Assembly: GCA_030704615.1 (NCBI GenBank)
Contig: CM060733.1
Coordinates: 3,286,001 to 3,350,000, forward strand
DNA: 64,000 bases
Origin: Takakia lepidozioides
Taxonomy: Eukaryota; Plantae; Bryophyta
Direction: 5' to 3'
The first letter of the stretch is position 1. Every line of letters begins with the position of its first letter. Shown here one piece after another: positions 25,101-64,000 of this stretch. The notes beneath the pieces are model-generated. The model was not told the DNA's origin. It did not search any database and saw only the letters and a list, made by a program, of their open reading frames with translations. A program made the translations under genes and the position numbers.

Positions 25101-25965
25101 ACAATTATGATGCCAGAAAGATAACGGCCGATAACGGTGGTTCAATGGTCTCGCACTCGTGCTTATAAAGCAGTTTGTATTTTGCATTCAATGTTGTCCA
25201 AGTGGATGATGGCCTGACGCCGATGACAAGGTGCAGCTATGACACTCAGCCGAGAATGTGGCAGGCGTAAATGAGTGACAGTGGAAATATTCCAAGCCTT
25301 AATCCGCCGAATGTAGACATGGTCAGGAGCAATTATTCCCAGCGACAAAACGCCGCAAGAGGATCTGGCTTGTACATTTCATTTATCGTCACGTGGGGGG
25401 TGTGGGAAATATCCCACGGGGTTATAATTGATGATCCTGTACAAGGGATCATTAACGTTATATTTTCTCGTTCATTCATCTAATTTTTCATTTCATCTAG
25501 TCATTCGTAAAATGGATGGATAGAATGAAAAGATGAATTGGATGATATTTGCATAGATGTTGGATGGAACACGCGCGACCGTTCGATTTCGAAAGGACGC
25601 GATGGTTCAGATCCTTTGCGACGGCACCATATAAGGGGTGTGGTCGTTCAGCCCACCCTTTCACCACTCCATTGTGTACGCGGAAGCGCTGCGGAAGTGG
25701 TAAGACCGAGCAGCGCTAGAAAAAAAAGAGTTTTGAAGAGCGGAGAGTGTGAAGAGCAAAGACTGTGTTGTGCATGGTGCCATGAGAGCTGAGAGAAGAG
25801 AGCGTGCAGTTCAGTGCAGCGTGAGAGTGCAGTGGAGGAAAGGAAGCAGACAGCGGATTCAAGTGCAGACAGGAGACGGGAAGGAAGCAGAGCGTAAGGG
25901 AGAGCGGAGCGGAGCGGTGGAAGCTTAAGGGTCAGGCGTTTCAGGTCAGCAACAGAGGCACCGAA

Positions 25966-27909: not shown

Positions 27910-28330
27910 ACAATCCCTGCGTCCCTTGATGGCAACGTCGACTAGACAGTGGAGGTTACTTGCGGAACCGGCTCAGGTGACCTGGCCCTCACTGTCAGAT
28001 CCACGTGTCTCTTCACCGTTTGAGTGTCCTTTGATCCTTTTCTTGTGTGTGTCATTTCCTCTGAATTGGATTCTTGGATCTACAAGAAAAGTTATCCAAA
28101 TCGGTTAGTGGCTGTCCACAAAGGTGTGCGAACGGAAATATGTATCCGGGTGGAAATATGTTTTATTCGGAAGTCCAGAAAGACGGATATAAGGAAAATA
28201 TTGGGATTATATATAATTACAATATTGTCTTATGGAAATAACATTCGGATTATTCCACTCACAAGTATGTATAATTACAATATTATCATATTGTATTCAG
28301 AAGTGTGTATGAATAAACTTTCACTAATTG

Positions 28331-31300: not shown

Positions 31301-32627
31301 TTAGATAGCTTCACGAGCCTCATAAGATCCTTTGACCATATAATCTTTGAGGGCCAGTCAGTGTAGTACTTCTTAAGATTGTCGTCGTCTACGTCTTGCA
31401 CAAGTTCCTGCGACATAATTGAATAAGGTCAGAAATGATATCGACCTAACAAGCATGTTGTTTAAAGTTCATGAACCTCCACTGTTCAGTGGAGGTTCAT
31501 GTTGTTACAAAAATTGGATTTTGTCGGGAAATTTACCTTGGCAGCAATGATCGTGTGTTGTCCACCGATGACGAAGAATCTGGAATTTTCCACCTCCTTC
31601 CAGTTTCGAGGTTTCGAACTAGAAACCTCCATAGGCTTCTCGGGGTTTGCGGGAATCAAATAAACTGGATGTTTGGAGTCGAACACCCGGAGCTGGTAAA
31701 GACGCGCTTTGACTTCGTCTTTGTGCTTCACATTTAGGGGCCTGTACACCATATCTCTGGGAGCAAGCTCCATCATGGAAACTTTGACGTCATGGGTCGC
31801 CTCAAACCCAAAAGGAAACATGTCCTTGTAGTCTTGCTCCAGCCTCTCCAGCATCTTCTCACACTTGTCTTTGTCGAATATGTCTGCAGCCTTGGGTTTC
31901 TTGGTATCTGTCATGAACGCATGATCCATCTCCTCCTTTTGTTTCTTCTTTCCCCTGATATACCGGCTTCATTGTCATCACCACCGGCGTCAATGGATTT
32001 CCGTTTTCCCTTCTTTGGCTTCGCTCTTGCAGCCTCCTCCTCTCGCGTCTTTGCAATCTCCTTACCCTTTAAGTAAAGCACATCCAAGAAATACCCCAAG
32101 CCATGCAAAAACCTTCATCTGTAAATTGAGTACCCTCGTCGCAATATGTGAACCCCGCCCGAATTGGACTCTCTCATCATGGCCTTCCTTAGAATTCGTA
32201 CCTTCAGTTTGAAGCCAAACGTTCTGGGAAATCTACCATCTTCCATCATGAACATTACCAACATCGGAAATTCCACATCCATCTCCAGCTCTATGTCGAC
32301 CACATCTGCATATTTGAGCTCGGCGACCTCTGCACCAATCTTGTATTGGAACCGGAACTTATGGTCCGGAGGTGTGCCAACGAGTAAAATGCCCCATTCT
32401 GTGATCTCCGGGTTCAGCTCAAAAATTGCCAGGTGATCATTCTTGAAATTCGGAGATTTTCGAGAAACAAATGAACCACAGATAGGTTTGCACATTCCAA
32501 CAATACAATCCCTCGGGGTAATGTTGTTGTCCACAGAACAAACCACCTCGGTCCTCAGACACATATCATGACAACCATACAAGATTCCCAGGACAGTAAC
32601 CTCCACTGTCCAGTGGAGGTTCAACAA
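28331..32627 (-). CDS. Element-1 accessory gene: ParB/Srx-like N-terminal domain, degenerate beta-class DNA amino-MTase-like fold, acidic tail (multi-exon, partly decayed)
   Basis: 31486-31929 has VYRPLN..FFVIGGQHTIIAAK (ParB-like boxes). 29186-30280 ends HELRPDTCDYLVIFFCRDGMSCVNIFGGLAMTYVLL, spliced to ERNIRVLDIN, resembling KP..L..LI....GD.VLDPF.GSG.T....GR..IG.E. The DPPY-equivalent position is degenerate. Confidence 0.6.
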
Positions 32628-42738: not shown

Positions 42739-43789
42739 TGAACGAAAGTTGCGGAATCCTCGAACTGATAGCCCGCAATTACCGAAAGGGGTATTAAGAC
42801 AAGCAAACCGAGGTCAACAAGGGTAGCTCCAATCCAAAGGTTGCAGGTGATGCATGCAAAGGATGTAGGGATGAGATGCACCTTCATTTCGGAAACAACA
42901 ACGCCAAGAGGCACTAACCAGAAAAACTGTTTTGAAATACTACAAGAAGCCGTGCTGTTTATGGATGAAAACAAACACTGAAAACGACATGAAACCAACC
43001 ATTATGAAAAGACGGCAACAACCCTGGAGAGCAGTAAACAGGAAGACCACAAATGTCATGAGGTTGTGTTGTGCCAGAAGAGCACAGCACAAACACTGAC
43101 ACTGCAGAAGATACCTCGCACGAATGCGTGGCAGACATGGTCGTATCCGATAGAACCCTTTATGCCGAATGACCCCATGGCGACGGTAACGGTAAAATGC
43201 AAACCACAGGGTAGGCAGTACAACACACGTGGATGCATATGTGAAGCATAACAATTATTGCGGATCTGCAAGAACTGCTCGAAAATGAACTAGCATTAGA
43301 TTTCTACGGCACATCCGAATTTGAAAGAAAGCAAGAAGGCCGCGGTGTATTGGCAGGCGACGCAGTACATCTGACATATATCGCTAGTGCATGCAACGGG
43401 TGTACTATTTTTCTAGCGCTTTATTGCTTGGATAATACGGAGACGACGGAATGGATGAATTCCGTTCGCACACAATAACAACACCCGCATCCAAATATGG
43501 TTGACAACGTCCAATTTCGATTTTGGTTACATGCCATAGCAGCACTTGTTACAAACGTCAAACGAGGTTTGCTATTTCATGAGCATGAGCGGCATGAGCA
43601 GAGTAGTAACACAATCGGTTTTCATGAGCAGAAGTACAAATTTCGAAAATAAAAAACAATAAAAAACAATAATTTAATGCAATGTGTCAGGAAAAACAAA
43701 TATATTATTCGGCCCCTTGAAGGGAAAATTGCACTTTTGACAGTTGTGCTCATGATATTTCGTCTTCCGCTCATGCCAATTCCCAGCGA

Positions 43790-44385
43790 TGTGCGAATAT
43801 GGCGCCGAATTTCGCGGTAATAGGGTCCGTAACCTGAAAAAACGGCGACGTATTTCGCGGCAATAGGTCTCTCTGGCGAAAAATGGTGCCGAATTCCGCG
43901 GCTATAGGTCCCCTCATGACAGGTAATTCGGCGCCATTTTTCCAGTGCATGTTCGGACTTAGCCAGTTTTCGGCGCAAAATAGGGAAATTCGGCGCCATT
44001 TTTCCAGACACTGTACCAGTGCATGTTCGGACTTAGCCAGTTTTCGGCCCAAAAAAGAGAAATTCGGCGCCATTTTTGCAAACACGGTACCAGTGCATGT
44101 TGGGACTTAGCCAGTTTTCGGCCCCAAAAAGAGAAATTCGGCGCCATTTTCCCAAACACAGGTACCAGTGCATGTTGGGACTTAGCGAGTTTTCGGCCCC
44201 AAAAAGAGAAATTCGGCGCCATTTTTCCAGACACGGTACCAGTGCATGTTGGGACTTAGCCAGTTTTCGGCCCCAAAAAGAGAAATTCGGCGCCATTTTC
44301 CCAAACACAGGTACCAGTGCATGTTGGGACTTAGCGAGTTTTCGGCCCCAAAAAGAGAAATTCGGCGCCATTTTTCCAGAAATGG
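43790..44385. repeat. ~74-bp tandem array (about 6 copies plus degenerate flank) containing GAAATTCGGCGCC and GGACTTAGCCAG
   Basis: GAAATTCGGCGCC at ~43985, 44059, 44133, 44208, 44282, 44357. Confidence 0.92.
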
Positions 44386-44535
44386 CCCCACAACTGCTTC
44401 TGTTGGATCTCAGTTTGAATGGAATATTGCCTCATTCCAGGAGTTTTGGGGTGCATTTCATTACACTGCAAAAAAAAAGTCTGATACAGCAAAATGCATT
44501 TGAAAATATCCATATGGAGGATTCCGTTTGCCCCA

Positions 44536-47500
44536 TCAATGATTTCTGGAATCCCTAAGGAGGAGTTTGTGCAGCTCGTTCACGCTCAACGCCGGTGCAT
44601 GAATAAAGTCATCAATAGTCACGTTCATCCTCAACCTCTTCAGGTAAATGTAATACAGATGCTTGCACGGATAATACTTCGAACCCTTCTTTGCTTCCAT
44701 CAACGAGAAGTCCGTACAGTTGCAAGTCGGCTCCACTCCAATCGTAATTGTGTATACATCGTCGCGTACAGCCGAGCCGGCCGTTGCCATCCGATACACA
44801 CGCCCAAGGCCGGGTGGGGGTACGTCCACGGAGCTCTGAATAGTGCAAGCCATCCCAAGAGCATTGGCAATCCGAGTCTCATTCAACTTGTTGGGAGGGT
44901 GTCGTCTCTTCACTCTTCCGAATCGCATTGTGGGATGTGCAGAATTGTCCAATCCGTCTCTACTGGACCGAGCAGTCTGCAATGGCTGGGTCTGAGGAAC
45001 CGGAAATGCGTGGGCCGGGATGTCTGTGCGTTGCACCATTCGAAATCCTGCTGCAGATAGAGCATCCGCCTCATTCTGAGAGAGGCTGCAACCCGGTGCA
45101 ACAGGCCAGACGCCCGGAGGCTCCGGCATTCCCTGAATCCCGTACTTGGGCTTGCCAAATACACAGGTCATTATGTCGTGCCTACAGAACCAAAATGTCT
45201 GCGTTGTGGCGTGAGCAAATGTGGGAGTCAAAAATCTGCCGCTGAAACAAGGTGCAGGTACAGCACCGTGTGGGTTCCTCCGAATCATCTCACCACAGCG
45301 TGCTCTCGTATCCACCCGGATGGCGCAACACTTCCCTCGAAATGCCGGCAATGTCCTCGCAATTCTCCACTGTGACTCCGACACTCTTGTCTCCACAATG
45401 GGAATGTTGTATTGCTTTACTACAGATGGCTCGTTATGTTGCCGGGGCACGCGCCCTCTGCTCAAAGGAGATGACGATCTTGAACGTGCAGGACTTCCGG
45501 TGCTCGACGAGACCTCCTCGGACAACATCACCGGACCACGAGGGAGCGTGCGAATATTCTTGTCAGCTCGCCATGAATCCTCTTCTCCGCCAGGTGCCTC
45601 GTCAAGTCTTCGTCTCACTGGACGGGTATGAACATCTCCTTCCAAATGTTGGCCTCTTCGCAGCAATGGCGTGTCCCGAAGGCCCTCTCGCAAGGCCGCC
45701 GCCCACTTCCGAGGATTCTTCGATCTGGAGGCAGTCCGCATCAGCATTTCCTGCCTGTCCGGACCCAAGCCCCACTGTTTCCCTTTCAAGAACTCGTTGT
45801 ACCTGCATTGCTGCATAATTGACCTCACAATGTCCTCCGTTGTGGCAGTGAGGATGTCCACCAGATGCGCCGCAGAGGAGGCACGCCAGGAAGAGTGCAC
45901 TGATTCGGCCATGTTTGTCGTGGGCATGTCGGTGTCGGAGTCGAGACACATTTCCTGCACAAGCACATGTTCAGGTTACAAGCAAGTTACAAATATGGCC
46001 AAGAATAATATCCAACGGGACGCGAATTCATGCAACTCACCTCCCGCATATAGTCACCGAACTGGAGGAAATGATAATGCCACCATGCTAGCCAACTGAC
46101 CATTGCTCCTTCGTCTGATTTCCTTACAGCACCTGACGATGTCCACCAAGCCCGTATGCATGTAAACTGTGTCTCTGCATCATCCAAGGTGGGAGCGCGC
46201 TTCCACGCAAGGCACATGGAACGGTGCTCCTCTCTGAAATCTGGCGCCACGAGCCTGGTTGTGTATTGCGAAAGGCTCTGCAGAAAATGGAACCCACAAG
46301 ATCTCTCCTTGCCTTCCATGGGAACATTGGGGTCTTGCCCGTACACCCTTCGGATAGCAGCCCAATTTGCTTGTGCGTTGTCCGCCATGAAACCACGGAA
46401 ATTGGGAGGGGGCAATCCCGCCTTGGCCATCTGTTCGTTTATTCCCTGCCAAAGAAGCATCTCCGATTGTGTGTCCTCTCCTTTCATCTCACAAATAGCA
46501 ATTGTCATTAGCATCCTGCAGTGGGTGTCGTAGACATGTGCACCCATTGTCACCCACTGGTGATTTGTAATTCGCTTGATATGGTCGAACATGACCCAAC
46601 TGTTTGACAAGTTTCCACTCGTCATCCTGTCGACCAGTTCGATGCCACTGCCAGGTCCACACGTGGACATTTTGAATACGAAACAACGATCTGCCTCAGT
46701 CCCTTGTCCTGGAAACCTACTTCCATGAATGTAGTCATATCCACATCGTCGCTTCACCTCCAGAATGGAGTGCATATCCGAGCCACGCCCAATTTTCTGT
46801 TTGCATGAGACAATGTGGTTTCGGACATTCGGTGAACATACGTGGGACACCGACTCCAGCAATGCCTCCATTTCCTTCTCGTCGAGAGGAACTCTATCGG
46901 AGCCGTCTTCCGACATAATTCTGGCCAATGCCATCTTATGGGCGGCTTGGAGCTGTATCTGTTTGGGTTTGGCACCCGGTCTCAACTTAACCTCCTCCTG
47001 AACGAGCTGCTCTGCTTCGTGGGCAGCCTCCCGCGAGTTCCCCCTCGCCAATTTGTGACAATGGGAACCAACGTGTATGCAAGCTCGGGTGAGGTCAGGG
47101 AAACGGTGCAATACATAGAACTGCTTGGCATTACAAACAGACATGCAGTGTGGTGGTTCTTTGCAATGCGCACACTTAAATGTGGAGTTCGGAACCTTCT
47201 CCTGAGCTCGAAATGGTTGGTGAGCTGTGCCTGTCCAATCGGTCTCGTTCCTGTGACCTCTGGATTTAAAGTGGAAGCAAGTTGGGGAGAAACACCGCAA
47301 CGCGCCCGCACAAACAATGTAGCGCACCCGCACACCATCAAGCATCTTCATGCTGGTGGTTTTTGGTAACGCACCAAGGATGACCGTCATGTTTTCTATC
47401 CATATTTGTCAACATTCCGGACGCCCTCGAGTAGTCCGCCCGAGGAGGGAACTCAAAGAAGATATTACTGTCGACGTCGGCGGGAAGGCATGTAACCAAT

Positions 47501-48246
47501 TTAATTGTGAACTTGCTGTAGTCCAGCCCGGCCAGCTCCGACCGGTGTCCTTCCAGGTGAAGCCCTCGCATAATTTCTAGAATAGATCGAACTGCGGTGC
47601 TCGTGCTGGGAATATGACTCCCTCCTCCACTGACGTCCATTGAGGACTTGCCTGATCTCCAGGACGACCTCGGAACTTCCATGACCTCGTCTAAGTCGGA
47701 CAAGTTGTGAACAACCCGGTTCTCGGTCGTCTTCATGGATGGGTTCGGCTCTGGATTTACTTCGTTGCGGACTTCTCTCTTTGAGGTACCCACTCTCTGA
47801 TTCGCGGATTGTTTCGTGGAAGGCGCCAGGATAGACGGTGCATTTGGCGAGCAAATGAAGTCCCCAACAGCCCTGTATATGACGCTGTCCGATGGTGGAA
47901 CTCGCCATTCCCTGCCATCGCCGAAATCATCGTGGAGCACAACAATACTCTCGACAACAAGGCCGTTTGAGTCCTTCATTTCCTCCTCCAAAAATACCGA
48001 CCCCGGTTTCAGGTGGTATCGAACGCACAGATATTTCTCCATCACCCGGCAGGTGTCCCCTCTGCACGGAAATGAAGCTCTATGCTCGTGAGGAGGGCAG
48101 TACACTGTAGTGCTCGGGTTTTCCGCCATGGGAGATGTGCACACAAGACTGCCAGGATGGCGTGCGGGGAAGCTCCCTGGTAGAAGGGGGTGCAGCGATG
48201 GGAATGAATGCGATGCCGTTTGTCCGAGCGACGAAGCCTGATCCAA
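44536..48246 (-). CDS. Mutator-like DDE transposase B, paralogue of A, with SWIM finger; one frameshift at ~47360
   Basis: WVMFDH, FMADN, CGFH, NMAESVHS; SWIM CNCTDF..CKH. KHDGHPWC is shared with A, and the intron at ~45955-46040 is in the same position as in A. Confidence 0.87.
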
Positions 48247-48429
48247 ATCCAGGGAGCCAACTATCTCAAAAATCCACAGTCAGAGTGTTAATGAACCTTG
48301 TCTCCGGAATGCGGCCCCTCGTCTTTGTGCAATAACTGCCAACGGTATGCAGTCAGAAAGTGGGGGGCCGTCCGGATGATGACGGCTGAAGGGGAGAAGC
48401 CGGCACCGTGCCGTCACATTACTACCCCC

Positions 48430-49340
48430 GAATGGAAATTCGGCACCCAATATCCAACAGAGGAAGCCCGGATGAAGTCGCCTCGGGCGCAGAGGCCGGA
48501 GTGTGTGCGACAGAGAACATCCCTGGATGGAGATTCGGCGCCGAATTTCCATCCGGGCCCCCCAAAGGGAGTCGTGTCGGGGGGTCAGGCCGAAAACTGG
48601 ACGGCATAAAAACATCCCCAGATGGAAAAAACGGCGCCGAATTTCCATCCGGGGCGGTTTGGATGCAGTCGGGGAGGGGGGAGTGGCCTGCACTTGGCCG
48701 TCACATTTCAACCCCCAGACGGAAATTCGGCACCGAATATCGAACAGGGGACGCCCGGATGAAGTCGCCTCGGGCGCAGAGGCCGGCGAGTGTGCGACAG
48801 AGAACATCCCCTGGATGGAGATTCGGCGCCGAATTTCCATCCGGGCCCCCAAAGGGAGTCGTGTCGGGGGGTCAGGCCGAAAACTGGACGGCATAAAAAT
48901 CCCCAGATGGAAAAACGGCGCCGAATTTCCATCCGGGGCGGTTCGGATGCAGTCGGGGAGGGGGGAGTGGCCTGCACTTGGCTGTCACATTTCAACCCCC
49001 AGACGGAAATTCGGCACCGAATATCGAACAGGGGACGCCCGGATGAAGTCGCCTCGGGCGCAGAGGCCGGCGAGTGTGCGACAGAGAATATCCCCTGGAT
49101 GGAGATTCGGCGCCGAATTTCCATCCGGGCCCCCCCAAAGGAAGTCTTGTCGAGGGGTCAGACCGAAAACTGGCCGACATAAAAACCTCCCCAGATGGGA
49201 AAACGGCGCCGAATTTCAATTCGGGGCCGTTCCAATGCAGTCGGGGAGAAGGGAGAGTCGGCACCTGGCCCTCATATTTCAACCCCCGGGACGGAAATTC
49301 GGCACCGAATATCCAACAGAGCGGCGAGAGGCGGCACCTC
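48430..49340. repeat. ~286-bp tandem repeat (about 3.2 copies), each with three copies of the element-B palindrome
   Basis: GGAAATTCGGCACC recurs at ~48434, 48721, 49006, 49293. Confidence 0.9.
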
Positions 49341-49359
49341 TCCACAGAGACCATCCCCC

Positions 49360-51610
49360 GGATGGAAATTCGGCGCCGAATTTCCATCGGGGGGTAAGTG
49401 GAATCCCGGATGGATGGAGATTCGGCGCCGAATTCCCATCCGGGGGGTAAGTGGAATCCTGATGGATGGAGATTCGGCGCCGAATTCCATCCGGCAGGTA
49501 AGTGGAATCTCTCGATGGATGGAAATTCGGCGCCGAATTTCCATCCTGCAGGTAATTCGAATCCCGATGAATGGAAATTCGGCGCCGAATTTCCATCCAG
49601 CAGGTAAGTGGAATCCCGGATAAATGGAAATTCGGCGCCGAATTTCCATCCAGCACGTAAGTGGAATCTCGGATGGATGGAGATTCGGCGCCGAATTTCC
49701 ATCCTGCAGTAATTCGAATCCCGGATGAATGGAAATTCGGCGCCGAATTTCCATCATCAGCAGGTAATGGGAATCCCGGATAAATGGAATGTTCGCCCGA
49801 ATTTCCATCCTGCAGGTAATTCGAATCCCGAATGAATGGAAATTCGGCGCCGAATTTCCATCCAGCAGGTAATGGAATCTCGGATGGATGGAGATTCGGC
49901 GCCGAATTTCCATCCTGCAGGTAATTCGAATCCCGGATGAATGGAAATTCGGCGGCCGAATTTCCATCCAGCAGTAAGTCGGATCGGTGGCGTATGGATA
50001 TTCGGCGCCGAATTTCCATTCGCCATGTATTTCATCGCTCAGATTACCTTCCTGCAGGTAATTCCCAATGGAATTACCTTCCTGCAGGTAATTTTCCAGA
50101 TGAGAATTACCTTCCTGCAGGTAATTCCATCTATGCCGGTAGGATGTTAATTCCCGATGAGAATTACCTGCAGGAAGGTAATTCTCATCTGGGAATTACC
50201 TGCACGGAGGAAATTCCTCGCTCAGAAATACTTGGCGAATGGAAATTCGGCGCCGAATATCCATACGGCACCGATCCGACTTACCTGCTGGATGGAAATT
50301 CGTCGCCGAATTTCCATTCATCCGGTATTTCGAATTACCTGCAGGATGGAATTCGGCACCGAATTACCTGCGTGAGGGAAATTTCGCGCGCCGCCCTACC
50401 TCCGCGATGGAAATTCGGCGCCGATTTCCATCCGAGCGCTTTCCGAATTACCTGCTTGAGGAAATTTCCAGCCCGCCTACTTTGGCTGGATGGAAATTCG
50501 GCGCCGGATTTCCATCCGCGCGCTTCCGAATTACCTGCTTAAGGGAAATTCGGCGTGCCGCTCTATCTCCGCGGATGGAAATTCGGCACCGGATTTCCAT
50601 CCGAGCGCTTCCGAATTACCTGCTTGAGGGAAATTCGGCGCGCCGCCCTATCCCGCGGATGGAAATTCGGCGCCGAATTTCCATCCGCGCGCTTCCGAAT
50701 TACCACCTGCGTGGGAAATTCGGCGTGCCGCCCTACCTCCGCGGATGGAAATTCGGCGCCTGATTTCCATCCGAGCGCTTCCGATTACCTGCTTGAGGGA
50801 AATTCGGCGCGCCGCCCTGTCTCCGCGGATGGAAATTCGGCGCCGGATTTCATGCGCGCGCTTCCGAATTACCTGCGTGAGGGAAATTTCCAGCGCGCCC
50901 TACCCCACCTGCTGGATGGAAATTCGGCGCCGGATTCCATCCGCGCGCTTCCGATTACCTGCGTGAGGGAAATTCCGCACCGCCAACCTGGCTGAATGGA
51001 ATTCGTTGCCGGATTTCCATCCGCGCGCTTCCGAATTCCTGCGTGAGGAAATTTCCAGCGCCGCCCTACCGGCTGAATGGAAATTCTGCGCCGGATTTCC
51101 ATCCGCGCGCTTCCGAATTACCTGCGTGAGGGAAATTTCCAGCGCCGCCCTACCTGGCTGGATGGAAATTCGGCGCCAGATTTCCATCCGCGCGCTTCCG
51201 AATTACCTGCGTGAGGGAAATTTCCAGCGCCGCCCTACCTGGCTGATGGAAATTCGGCGCCGGATTTCCATCCGCGCGCTTCCGAATTACTTGCGTGAGG
51301 GAAATTCGACGCTTCGCCCTACCTCCGCGGATGGAATTCGGCGCCGATTTCCATCCGCGCGCTTCCGAATTACTGCGTGAGGGAAATTTCCAGCGCCGCC
51401 CTACCTGGCTGGATGGAAATTCGGCGCCGGATTTCCATCCGCGCGCTTCCAATTTACCTGCGTGAGGGAATTTCCAGCGCCGCCCTTCCTCCGCGGATGG
51501 AAATTCGGCGCCGGATATCCCATGCGGCGCTCCAGAATTACCTGCAGGATGGAAATCCGGCGCCGGAATTTCCATCGTGCAGCGCTCCGAATTACCTCTA
51601 CTTGGAAATT
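49360..51610. repeat. Dense array of the palindrome ATGGAAATTCGGCGCCGAATTTCCAT (~55-85-bp units), unit polarity flipping at ~50040-50220
   Basis: Left units carry GCAGGTAA(T/G)T, right units carry AATTACCTGC. The centre has repeated AATTACCTTCCTGCAGGTAATT. Confidence 0.92.
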
Positions 51611-52872
51611 CCGGGACTGTTTACGTCGATTTTCATTTCCGACCTGGAGGGCTTCATCCGACATTTAATTGCGCAGTTGGGCAATAAATGTCGACGGCTG
51701 TCGGTTATTATTTGGGCTGGCGACGCATGGCTTCCTGGACACGTACCCTAATCTCATGCTAAACTTGGCTAACATGGTATTCCAGGCATGTACCCCCAAA
51801 AAAGAGATCTTTTGTGCTGGGACTTATGCCGCCTGAAGGGCGTGGCTCTCCTGAGAGAGACCTCACATCCAGACCGCGGCGGAAGTTGAAAGCTCTGTAC
51901 TACGGACGACGGCCATCTCTCGCATGGCCAAACTGAAGCTCCAGCAGAAGATTCCAGTGTCTTGCTCACAACCTGCGCCACTGAAGCCGAGTACTCTCAG
52001 GCAAGCCACTTCTGCTTTCGGTTTGTTCGATTTATTTTTTGCTTTCGCTTTGTTACCTCGCTTTGTTTTGCATCTTCATCCTGGCTTTGCTGTATGAGTG
52101 AACTTTAGATAGTTGAGTGAACCTTAGATTGTTTGCAATGCGTGTGCAAATCCGGCAGCTCTAGAGAAGGCTGCTTGTGCATGTCATTCTTAGGCAATGT
52201 TGCATTTGTTTTCATTGTTGTTTGCATGGCTCTCCATACTTCCTAAACTTGTTATGTTTTCATTTTTGCTACATGATTGTTGCTATGGTGGATGCGCTGC
52301 TCGTTGCGATGCTGCTTTTTGCACCGATGTTGGTTTTCACGATTTTTTGTCATGACAGAGTGACGACGAGCCCGGCACGCTGGTGGTATCATCGACAGCT
52401 CCAACTCATCGCATGTTTGAATCGCCCAACTTGGGCGAGAGGGCAAACTTAAACCTTTTGTTGGTGGACGAGAGGACTTGCAACGAGATTACGACAGAGT
52501 AGGCATTGGGGAGGTTGGTGCAGGCGGCATGGCAGGTGAAGGGCGTGAGGACATGAGGACACAGCAGATCCCGCAATGGAGGTTGTTCATGCACATGCAG
52601 TAGGGCCCGCCCACGCAAAGAAAAAGAAGAAAGCTAAGCACATGCAATCCCCGGCGAGAGGCAGTCACGGGCTGCGGAGGGGGGAGAGCATGCGCGCGAG
52701 GGTGTCAGTTCGCCTCAATCAAAAGGTGGTCGTCCTGGAGGGCTCCCCTGCTGCTAGCCCTAGTAAGAAACAGAAGCCCGTGAGAGGGCAAAAGAGAGGG
52801 CAAAAGAACAGACGAGACAGAATGCTAGCCAGAGGAAAGACAAAAGGCAGCTGAACAGAGGCCAGGTCCCAA

Positions 52873-55800
52873 ATGACAGATGCCAATGTAAGCGAGGGAC
52901 ACACAGAGACGGTGGATCCCTACAAGACACCACAGAGAGGCAGTAGCACACCGGTTAGACCATCGCGGGCAAGAGCAGCCCCCGCAATTACCCATACGGT
53001 GGAGAGTGGAGGAGAGGAAAGAACACCTGAAAGAGCACGGATTGTGGCAAGTTCGAGGTGAAGCCAGGGAGAGGGCAGTAGAGACGACGAAGTGCTGGAG
53101 GTGGTTTCGCAGGTGCTGACCCGTTGAGAGGACGACATGGAGGTTTCCTGACCAGGATGACATCCTCTCGGACATCCCAGGCCCCAAACCCGGAGCATAC
53201 AGGCTGGATTTGCGTCCTGGTGGGCTGCCGGAAACCCCTCTGCAGCAGACGTCATGTCTGAGGCGGATATGAAGTTGGCCGCTGCCAAGATGTTGGAGGC
53301 AACCCACAGCAACATTGGCAGGGTGTTGGGGGCATGGTGTCCCCGCCAAGCTTCGAATTCCCCTTTGCCGCTTGGTGTCATTGCAGTGGTGAGACCTGCC
53401 CTCCCAGGCGATATCGACAAGCTGAAATTCTCTTTTCGGGATGGATATCGAATGGGGTCTGCCGCCTTTTACGTTTTCCATTGAGAACGACCACGGAGCT
53501 TCCCGTGCCCACACTTCCGATGAGGTGGACAAATGGGGTCCCCATTGGCAAACGCGAAATGAGGAGTTCGAGAGATCGATTGCTAGTGATCCTCTTTTCC
53601 AGCACATGTCCGGTAAGATGTTCTACGTGTGGGACGGCAATCATCGCCTCCTGGCATGGATGGAGCACATTGCCCAAGCCCACCCCAACGATCTCGATTG
53701 GCATTTCGCCGTCGATTGTGTTGTGCTGAAGGTTGCGCGGGGCCCAAAGATCGCAGTCTTCTCAAAGCTGCAATGGCCGACATCAACTCGTAAGCTACAA
53801 CCCCTCTCGCTTTTGGACTTTGAATTTGGAAGTCATTTCATTGCGAATCCTCATATATGATGAAAATTCCCATTTCAGTATTGTTTGATGGAAATGTGGC
53901 ACTGCAGGGTGACTGAGAATGCCTTCATTGCCATCAACTTGTCCCATATGCTCTTTCCGAGTGAAGGATGTCGGGAAGCAGGCAAGCAAGAGTTTTGCCA
54001 ATTCCCTCAGTGCCGACCTCCTGCGCAAGTCGGAGCAAAGGCAGACAGAACGTGGTATAGGCTGAGCGTCGACGCCATGGTGGACTACATATTTCGGGTA
54101 AAGCTCCTGACAGTTTTGTTGAGCTAATCTGTCTCTCCTCCCCCAATAGAAGAAATTGTGTTGAGCAGGATCTCTAATCTTATGTGCGCATTCTTGACAG
54201 ACGAAAATACAGCAGGATTTGGCACATGCGCGGAGGTTCTACATGGAGTCAGAGGAGAAGAATCCAACCCTCCCGGAACTCGAATCATATGTCAAAGCTG
54301 CGGAGGTGAGGGCCCGCATAAAGTACAAGTCGCGGATGGTAAAGTACGTGGCCATAGCTGATCCCGCCCTTGGTGCCGACTTTCTGGTGGAGGTGGGAAG
54401 CACTACTCTCGCGCTCTGAAGCCCACGATGACATTGGAGAAGCTCCATCGTCTAGCCACATCCTGTGTGGATGCAACAGAAAAGGTGATATATTCTTAAC
54501 AAAATTGTGGTGGCAACAACTCCTTTTTGTGGTGTTTGGCGCTTACGAATATGCTGGGTGGTTGGACAGACCCGGTGGCTCCAAATCTGGAATGGTTCCC
54601 AAAGTACCAGGGACATGTGGAGCTTCCCCAAACCGGACAAACTCTCTGACCCCACATTCGACATGTGGATGAACCGCATGACATGGTGGTTTCAGGTACT
54701 TCCCCACGCTTCGTTTGGGGCTTCTACTCTAGTAGGGGGTGGATTCATTGTATTTTTTTGAGGAAAGCGATCTGATGGACAATCTCCACAGGTGACGACG
54801 AATGCGCAAGAGCAGCTGGACACACAAGCACATCAGTTCAAGATGGAGATATCTCCTGCAGCAGAGAGCCTACGTGACTATGTGACGAGGTACTTTCTGC
54901 TCTACAAAACCAACCTATTCTTTCGGGAGATAGCAGATGCTCGCCGGAGCCACGAGTTCACCGACTAGCCGAACGCGGACAAAGCAGCAATGCGCCTTCT
55001 GTACAGGTACATACGCGCTGCCTTTCTTTCAAGTCCTGGCATTTCAGGATGTTAGAGGCCTCAAGTGGTGTTAGGGAAAATGGCGCCGAATTTCCAGTCA
55101 GGGCTCCGAAAATGGCTAAGTCCCTAGACTGGCTGGCCCGGAACTGGAAATTCGGCGCCATTTTCCAGTTCCAGGCCCTATTGCCGTTCAGGGACTTAGC
55201 CATTTTCGGCCTAAGTCCCTAGACTGGCTGGCCCTGAAGTGGAAATTCGGCGCCATATTCCAGTTTTAGGCCCTATTGCCGTTCAGGGACTTAGCCATTT
55301 TCGGCCTAAGTCCCTAGTGTGGCTGGCCCGGAACTGGAATTCGGCGCCGTTTTCCAGTTCTAGGCCCTATTGCCATCCAGGGACTTAGCCATTTTCGGGC
55401 TAAGTCCCTAGACTGGCTGGCCCTGAACTGGAAATTCGGCGCCATTTTCCAGTTCCAGGCCCTATTGCCGTTCAGGGACTTAGCCATTTTCGGGCTAAGT
55501 CCCTAGACTGGCTGGCCCTGAAGTGGAAATTCGGCGCCATATTCCAGTTTAGGCCCTATTGCCGTTCAGGGACTTAGCCATTTTCGGGCTAAGTCCCTAG
55601 GGTGGCTGGCCCGGAACTGGAAATTCGGCGCCGTTTTCCAGTTCTAGGCCTTATTGCCGTCCAGGGACTTAGCCATTTTCGTGCTAAGTCCCTAGGGTGG
55701 CTGGCCCGGAACTGGAAATTCGGCGCCGTTTTCCAGTTCTAGGCCCTATTGCCGTCCAGGGACTTAGCCATTTTCGGGCTAAGTCCCTAGACTGGCTGGC

Positions 55801-58345
55801 CCTGAACTGGAAATTCGGCGCCGTTTTCCAGTTCCAGGCCCTATTGCCGTTCAGGGACTTAGCCATTTTCGGGCTAAGTCCCTAGACTGGCTGGCCCTGA
55901 AGTGGAAATTCGGCGCCATTTTCCAGTTGTAGGCCCTATTGCCGTTCAGGAACTTAGCCATTTTCGGACCTCATTGTGTTTTTCATGAATGCAGGTACTG
56001 TAAGTTCTCCCTTTTGGAGAAAGGTCATCTGTCTTTCGAGCCACCATTCTTCCTGGCATGGAGGAACCCTGGGGCTGACTCCATGTACACTGACGATATT
56101 GTGAAGGAGTGGCATCTGGAACATTTGCGTGATTGCCCTTGGTATGTGGACCTTCCGCCCGGCTCGCTCGACCCATCCGAGTTTCAATTGAAGCTGGATG
56201 CTGAATTCCGACGAAACCGGGCTCCGCTGCCTCCATTGGGTGCAAAAGAGGCAAAAGCGCTTGCGAACTCCAGGAAAGTGGCAGAGCTTGCTCAGGCAGG
56301 AATTCAGGAGAAATTGCATGAGAAGAGTAAAGGTCAAAGGAAAAGGACAAGGAAACAGGTGACTGCAGTAACACCCAAAAGAAGAAAACCATCGGGGCAT
56401 CGGAGGAGGCGCAGGAGGGGACCCAAGAGAGTGACTCCGACGCCGATTTTGTTCAAGGTCCTGCGACTGCTGTTGCTCCTACCCAGTCACCGGTCGTCCG
56501 GGTTCCCAAGTCAGTTCGGAGTGGGACTGGCTCTGCCAAGAAGTTGGCATTTGAGGGCGAGCCTACACGCCGGTATTCGGCGGTGACGTTTACGCACAGG
56601 CCAAAGCTAGAACCTCCAACCATCATCCAATGCGTCAATGAGAGCTTCCTTGACGCTCTCGCTGCCAGGGCGAAGAAGATGGCACACAACAAGTCTCTGG
56701 CGGAGCAGAAGGGGAAAGCCAAGAAGAGGGCTGCCGGTACAGAGCCTAAAGACACCCCTGGTTTTGAAGCCGTGATGGAATTCTTCACGGCTGTGAGCAC
56801 GAATTGCAAGAGCACTCGGGGGGGGGGTTGAGGTGGAGAGAGCTTGCGACATGATTCTCCTCGACATTCCAGATGGGGAGCTGCTGGAGGGCCTGGATGG
56901 TGTGCCCACCTGGAACAGGTTTACTGAGGACTACTGGAAAGCCGGGTTTGGGCTGGCGGGGATGCTTATGGATGACGGTGGATGTGTGGTTGTCCTTGCC
57001 ACGAGAGGGAAGACCACAGAGAATGCGGTGGCAAGGTGGACACCGAAAAGTGTCACCCCGGTCCTCCTCAGAAAATGGTTCTGCATCAGTACGCAGGGGT
57101 TGCGAACAGAGGGCCAAAGTGTAAGTTATCAATCTATTGCATTCACTTCATATTGTGGTGTATGTTAAGTAGACCCTGGAATTGATCCCTTCTTTGTTGG
57201 ATGTGCAGACATTGGTGTTTGAGGCATATTGCTTTGTGAAGAGAGGGTCTACGTTCAAATTCCGCAACGACGGTCGTCTTGTTGATGCCGCTGTGGACCC
57301 TGTAACCTACGATGTCCTCTACAACTATGTGCCCCACTCTAGTATGCCGAAGGACACAAAGACAGGCAAACCGTGGCGGTACAGCCGGACCCGGAGCCCT
57401 GCTTTCATCCAAACCCTCATGGAGACGTGCTCGGATGTCCAAGGGCGGATTCTGGACCTCACATGCGGCACGGGTAAGCCTTCACGTGCTCAGTTTGTCC
57501 CCTGGCCCCATTGCAATTGCATGCCGCAAGCTATTAACCGCCCGCTTTGTTCCTCAAGTGCTTCAATGTGGGCAGGGACGTTGTCCGACAGGCATGTGTT
57601 CGCCTTCGAGCCAGATACTGCCCTCCACAACTCGGAACTTGCAGCGGCTGAACGTCTGCCGAAAGAGGAAGAGGCATCCTCGGAGGATGAGGAAAAATCC
57701 GAGAAGGAGCAGGGGGAGGAAGTTGGGATCGAGGCCGAGGAGCCCCCACTTTACGAGTGAGTGGTGGCATTGTAAGTTGCCTCCAGATTTTGTGAGGCAC
57801 CTCCCTCCGCTCTCTTATTTCATTGAAAACCATTTCTGCTTGTGCTGGTATTGACATTCTTGAAGTGGATTTGTTCTTACTGTAGGATGCCAAGTACTGC
57901 CGGAGGGACGTCTACACCGGAGTTCATGGGCAGGAGGAACGTGCCTTTTTTTGCCAGGGGGGATTTCATGCCTAGTCCAGAAAGGGAGTACATCCTTCCT
58001 ACTTATGCTGCCCGGCTTGCTTCGGTGTCCATTAGGAGGTGTTCCGAACGTAGTCGTGTACAGCAGATTTTAGACGAGGCAAGCCTCAAGAAAATGAAGA
58101 TGAGGGAGGAGGCAGCAGCTATTAGAGCCCGTCGGGCTCGTAGATTTGTGTTGGATTCTGCTGAGGAAAGTGGGGGAGAAGACGCAGAAGATTCCCAGGA
58201 GGTGAGGTGGACAGTCCTCCAAGGAGAGGACGGGATTTTTGAGAGGCATAGTGGAACTGATGCATCACAGAGCTCGGAGGATGAGGGGGATGAGGGGGAT
58301 GAGGAAGAAGGTGGGGCAAGTTCCTCGGAGGGTGTAGGAGAGTAG
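52873..58345 (+). CDS. Element-B accessory gene: ParB/Srx-like domain, helical region, beta-class DNA amino-methyltransferase-like domain (multi-exon, several frameshifts, start uncertain)
   Basis: VVRPALPGDIDKL..GY and MFYVWDGNHRLLAW (53250-53730). Motif IV-like CDMILLDIPDG (~56845-56877). RSPAFIQTLMETCSDVQGRILDLTCGTG..ASMWAGTLSDRHVFAFEPD (57390-57620) matches motifs X, I and II. Confidence 0.75.
55070..55970. repeat. ~94-bp tandem array (9 copies) inside intron 55007-55994 of the element-B accessory gene
   Basis: Unit CTAAGTCCCTAG..AACTGGAAATTCGGCGCC(A/G)TTTTCCAGTT..AGGGACTTAGCCATTTTCGG, with nested inverted repeats. Confidence 0.93.
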
Positions 58346-58685
58346 TGCCCATTCCGGCTATGACAGTTAGAACACACTTGTATAGACGTGGCTTGCCACA
58401 AAATTTGCAATAAAATGTTGCATTTCAAGTCCACTGGTGCCACATTCCAACTTCACATGACCCTATTTCCGTGCCTCCTAACCCTATTTCCGTGGACTCA
58501 CAATGGTCTGCTCATGCTTTTTTTTTTTCCGCTCATGCTCATGCCGCTCATGAAATAGCAGCCCCCCGTCAAACTGGAGAGCTCTAGAGGCATCGTGGGG
58601 AGCCCTTGTTTCCAGCGGAGGAGGAAGAGAAGGAAGTCACTATACTTCACGAACTCTAGAAACAGGAATAGAGCCAGAGATAGAA

Positions 58686-61600
58686 TGAGGATGGAAAGAG
58701 TGGACGAAGAGGAAAAGGAGGTAGAAGAGGGAGTAGAGGAAAGTGTGGCGATGGAGGAGCAGGAATCAGCAGAAGAACAGCAGCCCGCCATAGTTCCAAG
58801 AACAGATGAAGAGGACACCGCATCTGAGGGAGAGACAGACGAGATGGAAGAGGATGTTGAAGGTGGCCTCACGAGGAGTCTGCCTGCGGGAAAGAGGAAG
58901 GGGGAGAGGCTCACGTACACGCTCGGCGCAGAGAGCAGCCCGAAGCGCAAAGGGTCCCCGACAATTGGGGAGTCTTCTGGAGCAGCCAAGAAAAAGGTGA
59001 AATCTTTAAGACCCACATTTGTGTTTCGATGCTGATATAAATATAGCCCACACAGGACCAATCTGCACCAAGCCGATAGCACCGCAAACTGGAAGCCCAA
59101 ATAGTGTGCGGCAACGCACACTGTTTGGGCCTACCCATTTGGTTGATTGTTCAGGTGCGAAACGCCCAAACTTGGGCACTACAGCAGGTTCAATACAACC
59201 CAAATTGCAAGCTCAATCAGAGACAGTTGAGCTGAACATTTCACTGTTGTTTCCGTCTCGATATCGATTTTCCAGGACATGTATGTCAGGACGACAAAAC
59301 CCTTCATTGGCAGCTCAAATAGTGTGCGATGGCGCACACTGTTTGAGCTCTACATGTCACGGTTTTGTCCTTGTTGAATTCGCCCTTTAGAGCACGTTTA
59401 TGATGACGAAATAACCATTCAGTGGCAGCTCAAACAGTGTGTGTTGGCGCACACTATTTGAGCTGAACATGTAAGTGTTTTTTCCGATTGAAATTCGGCA
59501 TTTAGGGCACGTTTCTGAGGATGAAATAACCATTCAGTGGCAGCTCAAACAGTGTGCGCCAACGCACACTGTTTGAGCTGTACATGTCACTGCTTTTTTG
59601 GTGTTAAATTCGGACTTCCAGGGCACGTTTATGATGATGAAATAACCATTCAGTGGCAGCTCAAACAGTGTGCGCCAACGCACATTGTTTGAGCTGAACA
59701 TGTCACTGCTTTTTTGGTGTTAAATTCGGACTTCCAGGGCACGTTTATGCTGACGAAATAACCAATCAGTGGCAGCTCAAACACTGTGCGTTGGCGCACA
59801 CTGTTTGAGCTGAACATGTAAGTGTTTTTTCCGATTGAAATTCGGCATTTAGGGCACGTTTCTGAGGATGAAATAACCATTCAGTGGCAGCTCAAACAGT
59901 GTGCGCCAACGCACACTGTTTGAGCTGTACATGTCACTGCTTTTTTGGTGTTAAATTCGGACTTCCACGGCACGTTTATGATGATGAAATAACCATTCAG
60001 TGGCAGCTCAAACAGTGTGCGCCAACGCACACTGTTTGAGCTGAACATGTCACTGCTTTTTGGTGTTAAATTCGGACTTCCAGGGCACGTTTATGATGAC
60101 GAAATAACCATTCAGTGGCAGCTCAAACAGTGTGCGCCAACGCACACTGTTTGAGCTGAACATGTCACTGCTTTTTTGGTGTTAAATTCGGACATCCACG
60201 GCAGGTTTATTATGATGAAATAACCATTCAGTGGCAGCTCAAACAGTGTGCGCCAACGGACACTGTTTGAGCTGTACATGTCACTCCTTTTTTGGTGTTA
60301 AATTCGGACTTCCACGGCCGGTTTGTGATGATGAAATAAACATTCAGTGGCAGCTCAAACAGTGTGCGCCAACGCACACTGTTTGAGCTGTACATGTCAC
60401 TGATTTTTTGGTGTTAAATTCGGACTTCCACAGCACGTTTATGATGAGAAAATAACCATTCAGTGGCAGCTCAAACAGTGTGCGTTGGCGCACACTGTTT
60501 GAGCTGAACATGTAAGTGTTTTTTTCGATTGAAATTCGGCATTTAGGGCACGTTTCTGAGGATGAAATAACCATTCAGTGGCAGCTCAAACAGTGTGCGC
60601 CAACGCACACTGTTTGAGCTGTACATGTCACTGATTTTTTGGTGTTAAATTCGGACTTCCACGGCACGTTTATGATGAGGAAATAACCATTCAGTGGCAG
60701 CTCAAACAGTGTGCGTTGGCGCACACTGTTTGAGCTGAACATGTAAGTGTTTTTTCCGATTGAAATTCGGCATTTAGGGCACGTTTCTGAGGATGAAATA
60801 ACCATTCAGTGGCAGCTCAAACAGTGTGCGCCAACGCACACTGTTTGAGCTGTACATGTCATCGCTTTTTTGGTGTTAAATTTGGACTTCCAGGGCACGT
60901 TTATGATTATGAAATAACCATTCAGTGGCAGCTCAAACAGTGTGCGCCAACGCACACTGTTTGAGCTGAACATGTCACTGCTTTTTTGGTGTTAAATTCG
61001 GACTTCCAGGGCCGGTTTATGATGATGAAGTAACCATTCAGTGGCAGCTCAAACAGTGTGCGCCAACGCACACTGTTTGAGGTGTACGTGTCACACTGTT
61101 CGAACTCACCTTTTCACTTTTTTCATCCAAAATCGGCCGCATATCTTGGAGTTTACAATGAACACTTACCTGGCACAAGTAGATGTTCAATTATCATTTA
61201 CATGGCAAGTGAAACAGTGTGCGTCAACGCACACTGTTTGAGCCCACTTTTACATTGTCTATTTTTGTGGAATTCGGCAACATAGGACATGTCTGTGAGG
61301 GTCAATGTACACTTACCTGGCAGCTTAAAATACTGTGCGTCAACGCACAGTCTTTGAGCCCACTTTTTCATGCCTAAGCCGACGTTTCATGCCTCTCTAA
61401 TATCAAGTTGAATGAACAACCCTGTAGGAGAAGATGCAAAGTGTGGCAGATGAGGTCCCTTCGGGTCAGGAGAAGGAGATAATTGTTGATGTGGACGATG
61501 AGTTCTATGAAAGCAAAGCCGCTGAGATGCTGGGGGGTCAGAAGGTAAACTCTCAGCTTGTGGTGCAAAGTCTGCTTGCCCCGGGTGGGAGGTTGAAGAT

Positions 61601-64000
61601 TCCCCTGTGTAGGTTGGTTTCCATGCCCGTCGTTCGTACACCCCTCGTCAAGGACATTCTCAAGCTGGAGGCCGAGTTTGTGCATGGGTATTTGGATGGA
61701 TCCGCAGTCTTTTACGTTTCTACTAGGGATTCCAAAGGTAATGAGCTCCTCGTGGATCAGTCAATCGTGGACTCCTGGGACCCCATTTGGAGACAGCTGA
61801 ACGAATCCTTCGAACTTCTTCTCTCCAGGAAACCTTCCACCCAGGCATTCTCGGGAAAGATGTTTCACGTTTGGGATGGGAACCACCGCTTGCTTGCATG
61901 GATGGCTGTCATTGGGAGGCTGCACTCACAGGAGGAAGAGTGGCATTACTCTGTTCGATCGATGGTGTTGGATTGTGACGGGAACATGATGGGTCTTCTG
62001 ACGGCAATGAATGATGTGAACATGTTGGTTTCTCATTCTACATGTTCCACTTGTGGTTCCGTTCTTTTTTGATTGAAGACCTTGAATTTCATTCTGACTT
62101 ACAGATATCATTCTGCAGAGGAACGGAGACATCGCATGTCAAAACGAGTTTGGTTCACACACTGTATAGGATACAAAGGATAGGGCAGATGCCCTTGACC
62201 AACTTCAAGACCATCCTTTCAGCAGAGATGTACAAGAAGTGCGAAAGCTCCAAGACATCGGAAACGTGGTACTCGTTGACCCGTGAGGCTTTCATGGAGT
62301 ACATGTACACGGTGAGATACATCTTCCTTCATCTGGTCTTCCATATTCCACATGTTTGTTTCTGTTTGTTTCCCTTGACCTTGTGCTGATGCAACTCTCT
62401 TGCATTCCCTTGCAGCAAGACATTGCAGATGCAGGGGAGCGTGGCAAACTGGAATACTACAGCTCTACCCCTGAGGAGAGAAGGACAGCAAAGGGGGTTG
62501 AGAGTCGCATCCAGAAAGAGATGACCTCTACAAGAAGGACTATAATGAGTGCTTTCGTGAAGCAGTTGAGAATTGCCGACCCATCATTCGGACCGCAGTT
62601 TCTCCTGGAGATAAAAAAAACCATTATAACAAGCCAGGCAAGCCAGAAATGGCCCAGGAGAAGTTGCACAGGCTGTCTACCGCCGTTGTGTCTCCAGAAC
62701 AAAAGGTGAAGTGGCTGCAGATATGGAACTCCGATCCCACAGTTAGGGATACCCACATGTTCCCAAGGCCGGAGAAAGAGAAGAAGACCCAGCGTGTCAT
62801 TCCTGTCAGTGACAATGTGCTGGACACCTGGCTTCACAAGGCCACTTACTGGAGCCAGGTGTGATGTCCTTCCCTGTGTCACTGTCTTTTCTCTTTTCCT
62901 GTCCTTATCTTTCTATTGCCTCTTACATTCGCTGTGATTGCTTTTGGTTTCATTCTTGCATTTGTATTGTTTTGCAGTTGGAAGAAAGGGCCAGATCGGT
63001 TCTGCATACTCAACTGGCTGATTATGGCATCAGTATGATAGCACCAAAGGTGTCCTTCGAAGCATACATGAGGAAATGGAGAGCCACAGTGTGGCACTCT
63101 TGTTTCTTTAGAGAGTTCAGCAAGGAGGGTGGCATCAGTCGAACAAATGAGCTGGACCAGCAAGAAAAAGGAGAGGAAGCCTGGAAACGATGCCTTTACA
63201 GGTGCACACTCTTGCACTACTTATTTGTGCTGTGGTTGCAATGTGTTGTGTGGCATACTGTTTAAGGGGGTCTTCCTGGTGTGATGGAAAAGTTGCCACA
63301 CAATATTTCCATTGTAAAATGAGGTTGTCTCTGTTGCTGCAGGTACATAAAGTTTGTTCTCCTGGAAGAGCTGGACAAACATCCAGATTTCGTGGACCTG
63401 TGGCTTGTCCCTGCTGGCAACCAGACCATGTTCACTACTGGGATCTTGCATGACTGGGGCCCAGACCATCTTTCTTCTTGTGGTTGGTATTTGGATTGCC
63501 CTCCTTCTGAGACCCCAGCTCCAGAGGTGTCTTTGAGGAGAGAGAATGACCGTATTGCAGCCACTGCCGCAGCAGCCGACCTCGACATTCATGAACGAAA
63601 TTTGAGGACTCTTGCAGAGAAGGAGCCTCCCGCTCACGATACCCCAGGTAGAGGAAGAAAGGCAAAGGGAAAAGATGTTGCTGGTGTTGTGGGGAAGGGA
63701 AGGGGTAGAGGGAAGGTGGCACAAGGGCAGGGAAGTGTTGCAGATATTGGCCCTGTGGAGCATGTCCAGCAGACTCCACCGCATGGTAGGGGATCCGGGA
63801 GAAAAAACAAGGGGGTGGTTGATCCCAAGGACCCGTACCATGCAGTGGAACATCCCACGAGGGTCATTCGCCCAACCAGGTTGGAGATGGCCAACGTCGG
63901 GTTCCTTGCCATGATGGAGTCGAAGAAATCTGATTACAAGGGCGAGCCATCACCAGTGTGGGACAGGATTGTGCAGTTCCTCAGCACGGTGCGTGTTCTC
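58686..64000 (+). CDS. Element-A accessory gene C, paralogue of the element-B ParB-like gene; 3' end (expected MTase-like domain) beyond window
   Basis: Acidic exon to 58996, phase-0 intron 58997-61427, then VVRTPLVKDILKL..GY..MFHVWDGNHRLLAW. Later LYR|YIKFVLLE matches LYR|YCKFSLLE of gene B. Confidence 0.78.
59090..61360. repeat. ~115-bp tandem array (about 19 units), each with an 18-bp-stem hairpin CAGCTCAAACAGTGTGCG-(CCAA/TTGG)-CGCACACTGTTTGAGCTG, inside intron 1 of gene C
   Basis: Hairpins every 114-116 bp from ~59311 to ~61045, with degenerate copies at ~59095, 61205, 61321. Two spacer variants. Confidence 0.95.

Follow-up and report, generated by a model that had tools for sequence, protein, structure and literature searches.

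A probable Mutator-like transposon accessory gene joining ParB/Srx-like and methyltransferase-like domains in the bryophyte Takakia lepidozioides

A plant gene in which a ParB-like domain precedes a bacterial-type amino-methyltransferase-like domain, itself deprived of the aromatic residue of its catalytic motif, raises the question of what such a protein could be and to whom it belongs, the host or a mobile element. The gene considered here lies in a stretch of 64,000 nucleotides of Takakia lepidozioides (assembly GCA_030704615.1, contig CM060733.1, positions 3,286,001 to 3,350,000), hereafter called the window, to which all unprefixed positions refer. An earlier note, made from the letters of the window, had placed it at 53254-57640 and compared it with DNA methyltransferases of Marchantia. 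Our analysis indicates that the locus is probably the accessory gene of a Mutator-like transposon, one that joins a ParB/Srx-like domain to a beta-class methyltransferase-like domain with a catalytic loop that is unusual throughout its family.

The transposon was delimited by blastn of both ends and by inspection of the flanks, and occupies 15,003 bp at 43564-58566. The blastn comparison of the two ends gives imperfect terminal inverted repeats of ~40 bp, including ..TGCTATTTCATGAGC.., and an 8-bp target-site duplication, CGTCAAAC, is read directly on the left (43556-43563) and on the right (58567-58574) of the element. Terminal inverted repeats with a target-site duplication of ~8-10 bp, the features by which a Mutator-like element (MULE) is recognized, are both found here. 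According to the list of open reading frames (ORFs), the transposase region covers 44536-48246 on the - strand with three ORFs (47338-48246, 45987-47390 and 44536-45966). A SWIM-type zinc finger is detected in the ORF at 44536-45966 with an E-value of 0.0038 and 17.2 bits, for a Pfam cut-off of 19.6, and, among named ESM-Atlas clusters, those closest to the middle ORF belong to MULE PF10551 (score 0.92-0.93, taken as a lead only); in Pfam, the PF10551 domain is unmatched in the transposase ORFs even at E<=10. The ParB-methyltransferase-like gene, on the + strand, is the second gene of the element and stands head-to-head with the transposase. It shows the arrangement of algal-type accessory genes, inside a DNA transposon and adjoining the transposase on the opposite strand.

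The gene is not isolated. A profile of its first exon matches 716 cluster representatives with E<=1e-3, 35 of them with E<=1e-30. Most of these are exon-sized metagenomic ORFs; the long members that bear a name belong to the liverwort Riccia sorocarpa, where paralogues are numerous, and to two ferns, Adiantum nelumboides and A. capillus-veneris. The Riccia protein P0155 (1,207 amino acids) is colinear with the window over four blocks, namely the ParB-like domain, WRNP..CPWYVD, motif IV and motif X-I, and this one annotated model contains both domains. In intact relatives, the predicted product is a protein of ~1,100-1,200 residues with an N-terminal DGxHR-type ParB/Srx domain, a long conserved middle part followed by a charged linker, and a C-terminal permuted N6/N4 methyltransferase-like domain. 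Profiles built without the window sequence match, in its six-frame translation, only the exons of the gene, with E-values of 9e-16 for exon F (motif IV) and 8e-07 for exon G (motif X-I); since just those exons are matched, the motifs are not due to chance. When exon G was used as query together with the intron read through, no homologues were retrieved. Several of the Riccia proteins (P0153, P0155, P0156 and P0178-P0180) bear the UniRef name 'Trimethylguanosine synthase', which is probably an automatic mis-annotation, N6_N4_Mtase being the sole methyltransferase family found by Pfam in P0153, P0155 and P0156, the three that were scanned.

For the structure of the gene we relied on four public runs of this organism, whose contigs align to the stretch at 90-99% identity; two of the runs (X1 and X2) are guessed to be RNA. 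Five splice joints are present in the X1 and X2 contigs, four of them GT..AG and one GT..AA, and the four introns traced for reading frame (96, 988, 88 and 84 nt) all preserve it. The gene, all features of which lie on the + strand, has at least eight exons and does not stop at 57640 as first proposed: homology of the last exon and the X1 contigs carry it to ~58345. Exon 1 (53254-53789), which codes for the ParB/Srx-like domain, opens with the ATG of position 53254 and includes DGNHR (53633-53647) inside the block YVWDGNHRLLAW (53624-53659). Intron 1 (118 nt, 53790-53907, GTAAGC..TGCAG) is placed by sequence and homology only, the same residues being read in L001 with no intron. The middle exons (53908-55006) contain the conserved blocks RVTEN.., WYRLS.., ADPALGADF.. 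and ..WLQIWN.., their borders within 54098-54570 being provisional, and they are interrupted by a GT..AG intron of 96 nt at 54696-54791 (joint 54692>54789, run X2). A GT..AG intron of 988 nt (55007-55994; joint 55003>55992, run X1) then leads from frame 0 to frame 1 and to the large exon (55995-57120), with WRNP..CPWYVD at 56059-56151, the charged linker and the first half of the methyltransferase-like domain, in which are located the motif IV-like DIPDG (56863-56877) and DDGGCVVVL (56971-56997). After a GT..AG intron of 88 nt (57121-57208, joint 57120>57209), the exon at 57209-57473 carries motif X and motif I, and the intron that follows (84 nt, 57474-57557, GTAAGC..CTCAA, joint 57473>57558) falls within the last Gly codon of motif I. 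The exon with motif II and an acidic stretch (57558-57771) is separated by a GT..AG intron of 114 nt (57772-57885, joint 57771>57886) from the last exon (57886-58345), which encodes a C-terminal acidic tail, is covered by X1 contigs over 57902-58357 and corresponds by homology to an extension at the C-terminus of Riccia paralogues (E 3e-05 against residues 311-354 of P0184). A single transcript running from the ParB exon to the methyltransferase exons is likely.

The intron of 84 nt that follows motif I had already been suspected, together with its AA acceptor, and both are borne out by one X1 contig of 770 nt which lacks exactly the 88-nt and the 84-nt introns. No shift of the cut gives GT..AG ends to the latter. 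Its removal yields ..LDLTCGTGASMWAGTLSDRHVFAFEPD.., in agreement with relatives which have no insertion there. In L004, a relative with ~30% identity, a GT..AG intron (L004:11100-11215) interrupts the same codon in the same phase as 57474-57557; the presence of an intron at the same position in so distant a relative indicates that the 84-nt intron is old, and the AA acceptor of the window is therefore probably mutated or unusual.

The motifs quoted in the earlier note are all found where it had put them, in the order ParB-like, IV, X-I-II, with MILLDIPDG at 56851-56877 in frame 1 and RSPAFIQTLM (57392-57421), ILDLTCGTG (57449-57475) and RHVFAFEPD (57590-57616) in frame 2. The same permuted order, IV then X-I-II, occurs in L004, where one natural ORF (L004:9872-11134) spans motif IV to motif I. 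The gathering score of PF01555 (N6_N4_Mtase), 26.7 bits, is passed by two Riccia proteins, P0177 (31.7 bits) and P0183 (27.0 bits, profile positions 16-217 of 221), and nearly reached by P0153 (26.2), P0155 (23.7) and L006 (22.4 bits), all five being aligned to the C-terminal X-I-II end of the profile, as predicted for the permuted beta class. Since the window exons are below this threshold, the membership of the window gene is deduced from its homology to these Riccia and L006 relatives. When the family profile was compared with PDB sequences, the three best matches were to M1.HpyAVI and CcrM, and Foldseek with the AlphaFold model of the Riccia relative P0156 placed CcrM first (6.6e-05), followed by M1.HpyAVI, M.BceJIV, M.MboIIA and METTL3/14, at a template modelling (TM) score of ~0.3. 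This model, of mean predicted local distance difference test (pLDDT) 56 and confident at residues 20-135 only, has its D-x-P-x-G loop after the strand 26-30. In a tblastn of the methyltransferase part against phages, all the annotated features under the weak matches listed are DNA methylases. Taken together with the splice joints, the PF01555 matches of the relatives support the description of an intron-containing gene with a permuted beta-class N6/N4 amino-methyltransferase-like domain.

The pocket for S-adenosylmethionine (SAM) and the catalytic motif have had different fates in this family. Once spliced, the window reads LDLTCGTGAS...VFAFEPD, with the SAM-binding motif I and the acidic motif II intact; Riccia, L001, L004, L006 and L009 keep both the motif I loop and the motif II glutamate, which align to D-x-F-x-G-S-G-T-T..G-I-E of M1.HpyAVI and CcrM. 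At motif IV, the window has DIPD in place of the canonical (D/N/S)-P-P-(Y/F/W), the aromatic being absent as first noticed. The earlier note had asked whether homologues usually read D(I/L/P)P(Y/F); the aligned family reads instead D-x-P-(D/E/H/T/S/I)-G: the motif takes the forms DHPH, DLPD, DMPE, DMPD, DLPT, DLPS, DMPS, DMPT, DLSS, DMSS, DFPI and DVPF, with an aromatic in one of ~18 aligned sequences. On these alignments the loss of the aromatic, giving D-x-P-x-G, is a trait of the family and not a peculiarity of the locus. CcrM, M1.HpyAVI, M.BceJIV and M.MboIIA share the permuted IV..X-I-II order and are the best profile and fold matches, but have (D/S)PP(Y/F) where the window family has D-x-P-x-G. 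A motif IV without its aromatic, next to conserved SAM-binding motifs, argues for an altered or non-catalytic domain, and we lean slightly towards a domain that would still bind SAM and would have lost or changed the classical base-flipping amino-methylation.

It is also possible, although we consider it doubtful, that the protein is an active DNA amino-methyltransferase, producing N6-methyladenine or N4-methylcytosine (4mC) with a non-canonical motif IV, by which the transposon would mark its own palindrome arrays. Activity is predicted for the algal counterparts (PMC12477816), and the conservation across distant lineages of D-x-x-x-G/S-x-G-A-S/T in motif I and of the glutamate in motif II is what a selection for SAM binding predicts. 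Motif IV likewise keeps its D and P, and in one Adiantum member it reads DVPF. However, in nearly all lineages D, E, H, T, S or I takes the place of the aromatic that would stack on the flipped base. In the MT-A70 family, partners that have lost this aromatic, such as METTL14 (EPPL), are inactive.

For the N-terminal part, the designation 'ParB-like' stands only at the level of the superfamily, in its DGQHR/DndB-like branch, and finds no confident fold behind it. In 51 sequences, the block WDGNHRLxAW has its G, N, H, R and W invariant or nearly so (N invariant, G, H, R and W at >=90%), and the window, with VWDGNHRLLAW, has the D-G-x-H-R feature of the ParB/Srx superfamily, placed at a strand-to-helix junction (strand 95-99, helix 103-115) even by a model of poor quality. 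The profile phrog_1033 'ParB-like partition protein' is matched by 16 of the 51 members (best E 7e-04) and TIGR03187 DGQHR by two (best E 3.4e-04); the commonest weak Pfam matches are DUF1015 (5 members) and DndB (4), which we take to be placed in the ParB clan of Pfam. For the ParB-like exon of a neighbouring paralogue (61434-62072), the Atlas leads, by language-model features, are the fungal DUF3723 proteins (0.96), ahead of ParB_N (0.90); DUF3723, known as accessory cargo that recurs in fungal Starship elements, has no Pfam match behind it here. The agreement of four libraries, each of them weak, is convergent and suggests that the domain belongs to the ParB/Srx superfamily. A tblastn of the ParB-like part against phages returned nothing significant, and no close relative of the ParB-like exon turned up when 185,579 prokaryotic genomes were scanned by pattern.

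The element also contains a palindrome of its own in large number. Its half-site, GGAAATTCGGCGCC, has 75 matches in the window for 0.02 expected, all within 43801-55917 and distributed in four arrays; since all of these matches fall inside 43564-58566, the arrays are confined to the element. The first array (43801-44380) has a unit of 74 bp with the core GAAATTCGGCGCC, and large intergenic arrays of the palindrome GGAAATTCGGCGCCGAATTTCC, with units of 284/96, 52 and 84 bp, extend over 48364-51614 between the transposase and the ParB-methyltransferase-like gene. The intronic array (55114-55967), with 9 copies of a 95-bp unit, lies wholly inside the 988-nt intron of the gene. The neighbouring paralogue has a different palindrome in its own array, with arms CAGCTCAAACAGTGTGCG (18 nt), a spacer of 4 nt, a unit of 116 bp and ~15 copies; the palindrome itself is found 13 times in exact form at 59541-61045. 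Short arrays of palindromic units, unrelated in sequence to the window palindrome, are also seen near the gene at two loci of another sample (L001:14240-14490 and L002:6845-6999).

The ParB-like domain may recognize the element's own palindrome GGAAATTCGGCGCCGAATTTCC, and this binding would bring the methyltransferase-like domain onto the DNA of the element, either to mark it or to shield the element from host silencing. Extended to the whole family, this would amount to a self-recognition system of land-plant transposons, in which a ParB-like domain loads on element-specific palindromes, as ParB does on parS, and the SAM-binding domain writes a mark other than 5-methylcytosine or blocks host marks over the element, so that device and binding sites would co-evolve in the service of anti-silencing; in this complete form, the scheme appears to us rather unlikely. 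Another function of the ParB-like domain, which we regard as quite improbable, would be that of a nicking nuclease regulated by nucleoside triphosphates (NTPs), helping transposition or DNA processing and not binding palindromes sequence-specifically. DNases and NTPases are indeed frequent among non-partition ParB/Srx domains, that of the Bacillus cereus ParB-methylase Bce_0392 nicks DNA non-specifically (reviewed in PMC5512222), and the best weak profile matches point to the DGQHR/DndB branch and not to partition ParB. A specific recognition nevertheless fits better with the fact that both paralogues of the window adjoin their own distinct palindrome array, and ParB-like accessory genes of red algae also adjoin arrays of inverted repeats (10.1101/2025.02.11.637652).

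As assembled, the window copy is a pseudogene, interrupted by two premature stops and by eight or more frameshifts. Exon 1 is broken by five indels at ~53327, 53340, 53385, 53474 and 53735, and the run contigs carry an indel at each of these five sites, restoring one frame from the ATG at 53254; in the relative P0001, exon 1 is a single ORF. Further breaks of frame are found at 53954, 53985, 53993, 56376 (a run of A) and in a run of ten G at ~56818-56827. The latter marks, immediately ahead of motif IV, the passage of the reading frame from 0 to 1, and X1 contigs end on either side of it. An in-frame stop occurs in the middle exons at 54963-54965, and a TGA at 57758-57760, four codons ahead of the splice donor at 57771, is probably premature. 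Most of the indels lie in short homopolymers and are compatible with an assembly error or with real decay. Other copies or strains are the most likely source of the transcripts observed.

Several observations weigh against an accessory gene with these two domains and the proposed mode of action. The RNA nature of X1 and X2 is a guess, and none of their contigs, which cover the gene piecewise, bridges the ParB exon to the methyltransferase exons. The window exons have no match in Pfam or NCBIfam at E<=1, including PF01555. On the structural side, the AlphaFold model of the ParB-like exon, obtained from an alignment of four sequences, is poor (pLDDT 50) and Foldseek with it gave nothing meaningful, while the comparison of the ParB profile with PDB sequences finds no ParB, its sole match being a spurious eL24. 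The methyltransferase model of P0156 inspires confidence for residues 20-135 alone, with the TM score of ~0.3 given above. Recognition of the palindrome is suggested by co-occurrence, in the two gene/array pairs of the window, and by analogy, and the copy of the window, broken as assembled, gives no sign of activity at the locus.

The gene is spliced and apparently transcribed, and the position of its 84-nt intron is old and conserved, which would suit a domesticated plant DNA methyltransferase comparable to the 4mC enzymes of Marchantia. It is nonetheless very improbable that this locus is a host gene, as it is located inside an element with terminal inverted repeats and a target-site duplication, a paralogue with 42% identity lies 3 kb away, paralogues are many in Riccia, and the window copy carries frameshifts and stops. 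The Marchantia proteins MpDN4MT1a/b, although likewise N4/N6 methyltransferases of prokaryotic type from a land plant without seeds, are encoded by host genes expressed in sperm, have a canonical TSPPY, and are described in a paper whose text does not mention a ParB domain (10.1101/2021.02.12.428880); they are not the appropriate comparison for a transposon accessory gene. Finally, chance motif matches in decayed repeat DNA, without any gene family, to which the silence of Pfam and NCBIfam on the window exons could have pointed, have a negligible probability and are refuted by the hundreds of homologues, the E-values of the window-free profiles (9e-16 and 8e-07), the spliced contigs and the relatives above the Pfam threshold.

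The accessory gene of a Mutator-like transposon thus remains the reading we retain, and its closest counterparts are found in algae. In the brown alga Ectocarpus, the element Sola1-1_Ec32 encodes an accessory protein of 1,104 amino acids with a ParB-like domain and an N4/N6 methyltransferase, proposed to bind and modify its own element, and the same publication refers to green-algal cases (Iyer et al. 2011) and to red algae (PMC12477816). By its published description, Sola1-1_Ec32 resembles the window element as a DNA transposon with one large gene on the strand opposite to the transposase; it is, however, of Sola type and from a brown alga, whereas the window element is Mutator-like, with named relatives in a liverwort and ferns. 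In red-algal Plavaka elements, PAG2 (a PF01555 methylase) and PAG3 (ParB-like) are accompanied by tandem arrays of inverted repeats beside the ParB-like gene, and self-binding was proposed (10.1101/2025.02.11.637652; Petroll et al. 2025, Curr Biol). Methylase and ParB-like domains are there also transposon cargo with adjoining arrays of inverted repeats, but they belong to two separate proteins, fused to SET and 2-oxoglutarate-oxygenase domains, whereas the window family would have one polypeptide, as in the Riccia P0155 model, and one of its arrays is intronic. The bacterial and phage ParB-methylases, such as Bacillus cereus Bce_0392 (reviewed in PMC5512222), likewise place a ParB/Srx domain before an adenine-methylase-type domain on mobile DNA, but are intron-free, have a few hundred residues and keep a canonical DPPY. 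In a literature search on ParB in transposons of bryophytes or ferns, none of the top-ranked papers mentioned ParB. The design is already published for algal transposons, and the window gene adds a member in a Mutator-like element of a bryophyte.

The window copy, being broken, is of value only as a further dated representative of the family, and the interest lies in the family itself. To our knowledge, few transposons bring along helper genes that modify chromatin or DNA, and among such helpers the main one to have been tested is the anti-silencing factor of plant VANDAL elements. In the case where the ParB-methyltransferase-like helper would bind its own palindromes, Mutator elements of bryophytes and ferns could recognize and protect themselves in a sequence-specific manner, and since brown-, red- and green-algal transposons share the design, the strategy would be old and widespread. 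That the family has lost the catalytic aromatic while keeping the SAM pocket poses a clear biochemical question.

Beyond the right end of the element, the segment 59298-64000 looks like a second element inserted directly after the first. It carries the second paralogue, which starts at 61434 with an intact first exon of 212 amino acids and continues past the end of the window. At 20900-32627, neither tblastn nor the family profiles, run over the whole window, detected a related cargo. Elsewhere, the sole Rfam match within the window is a transfer RNA gene at 4853-4924.

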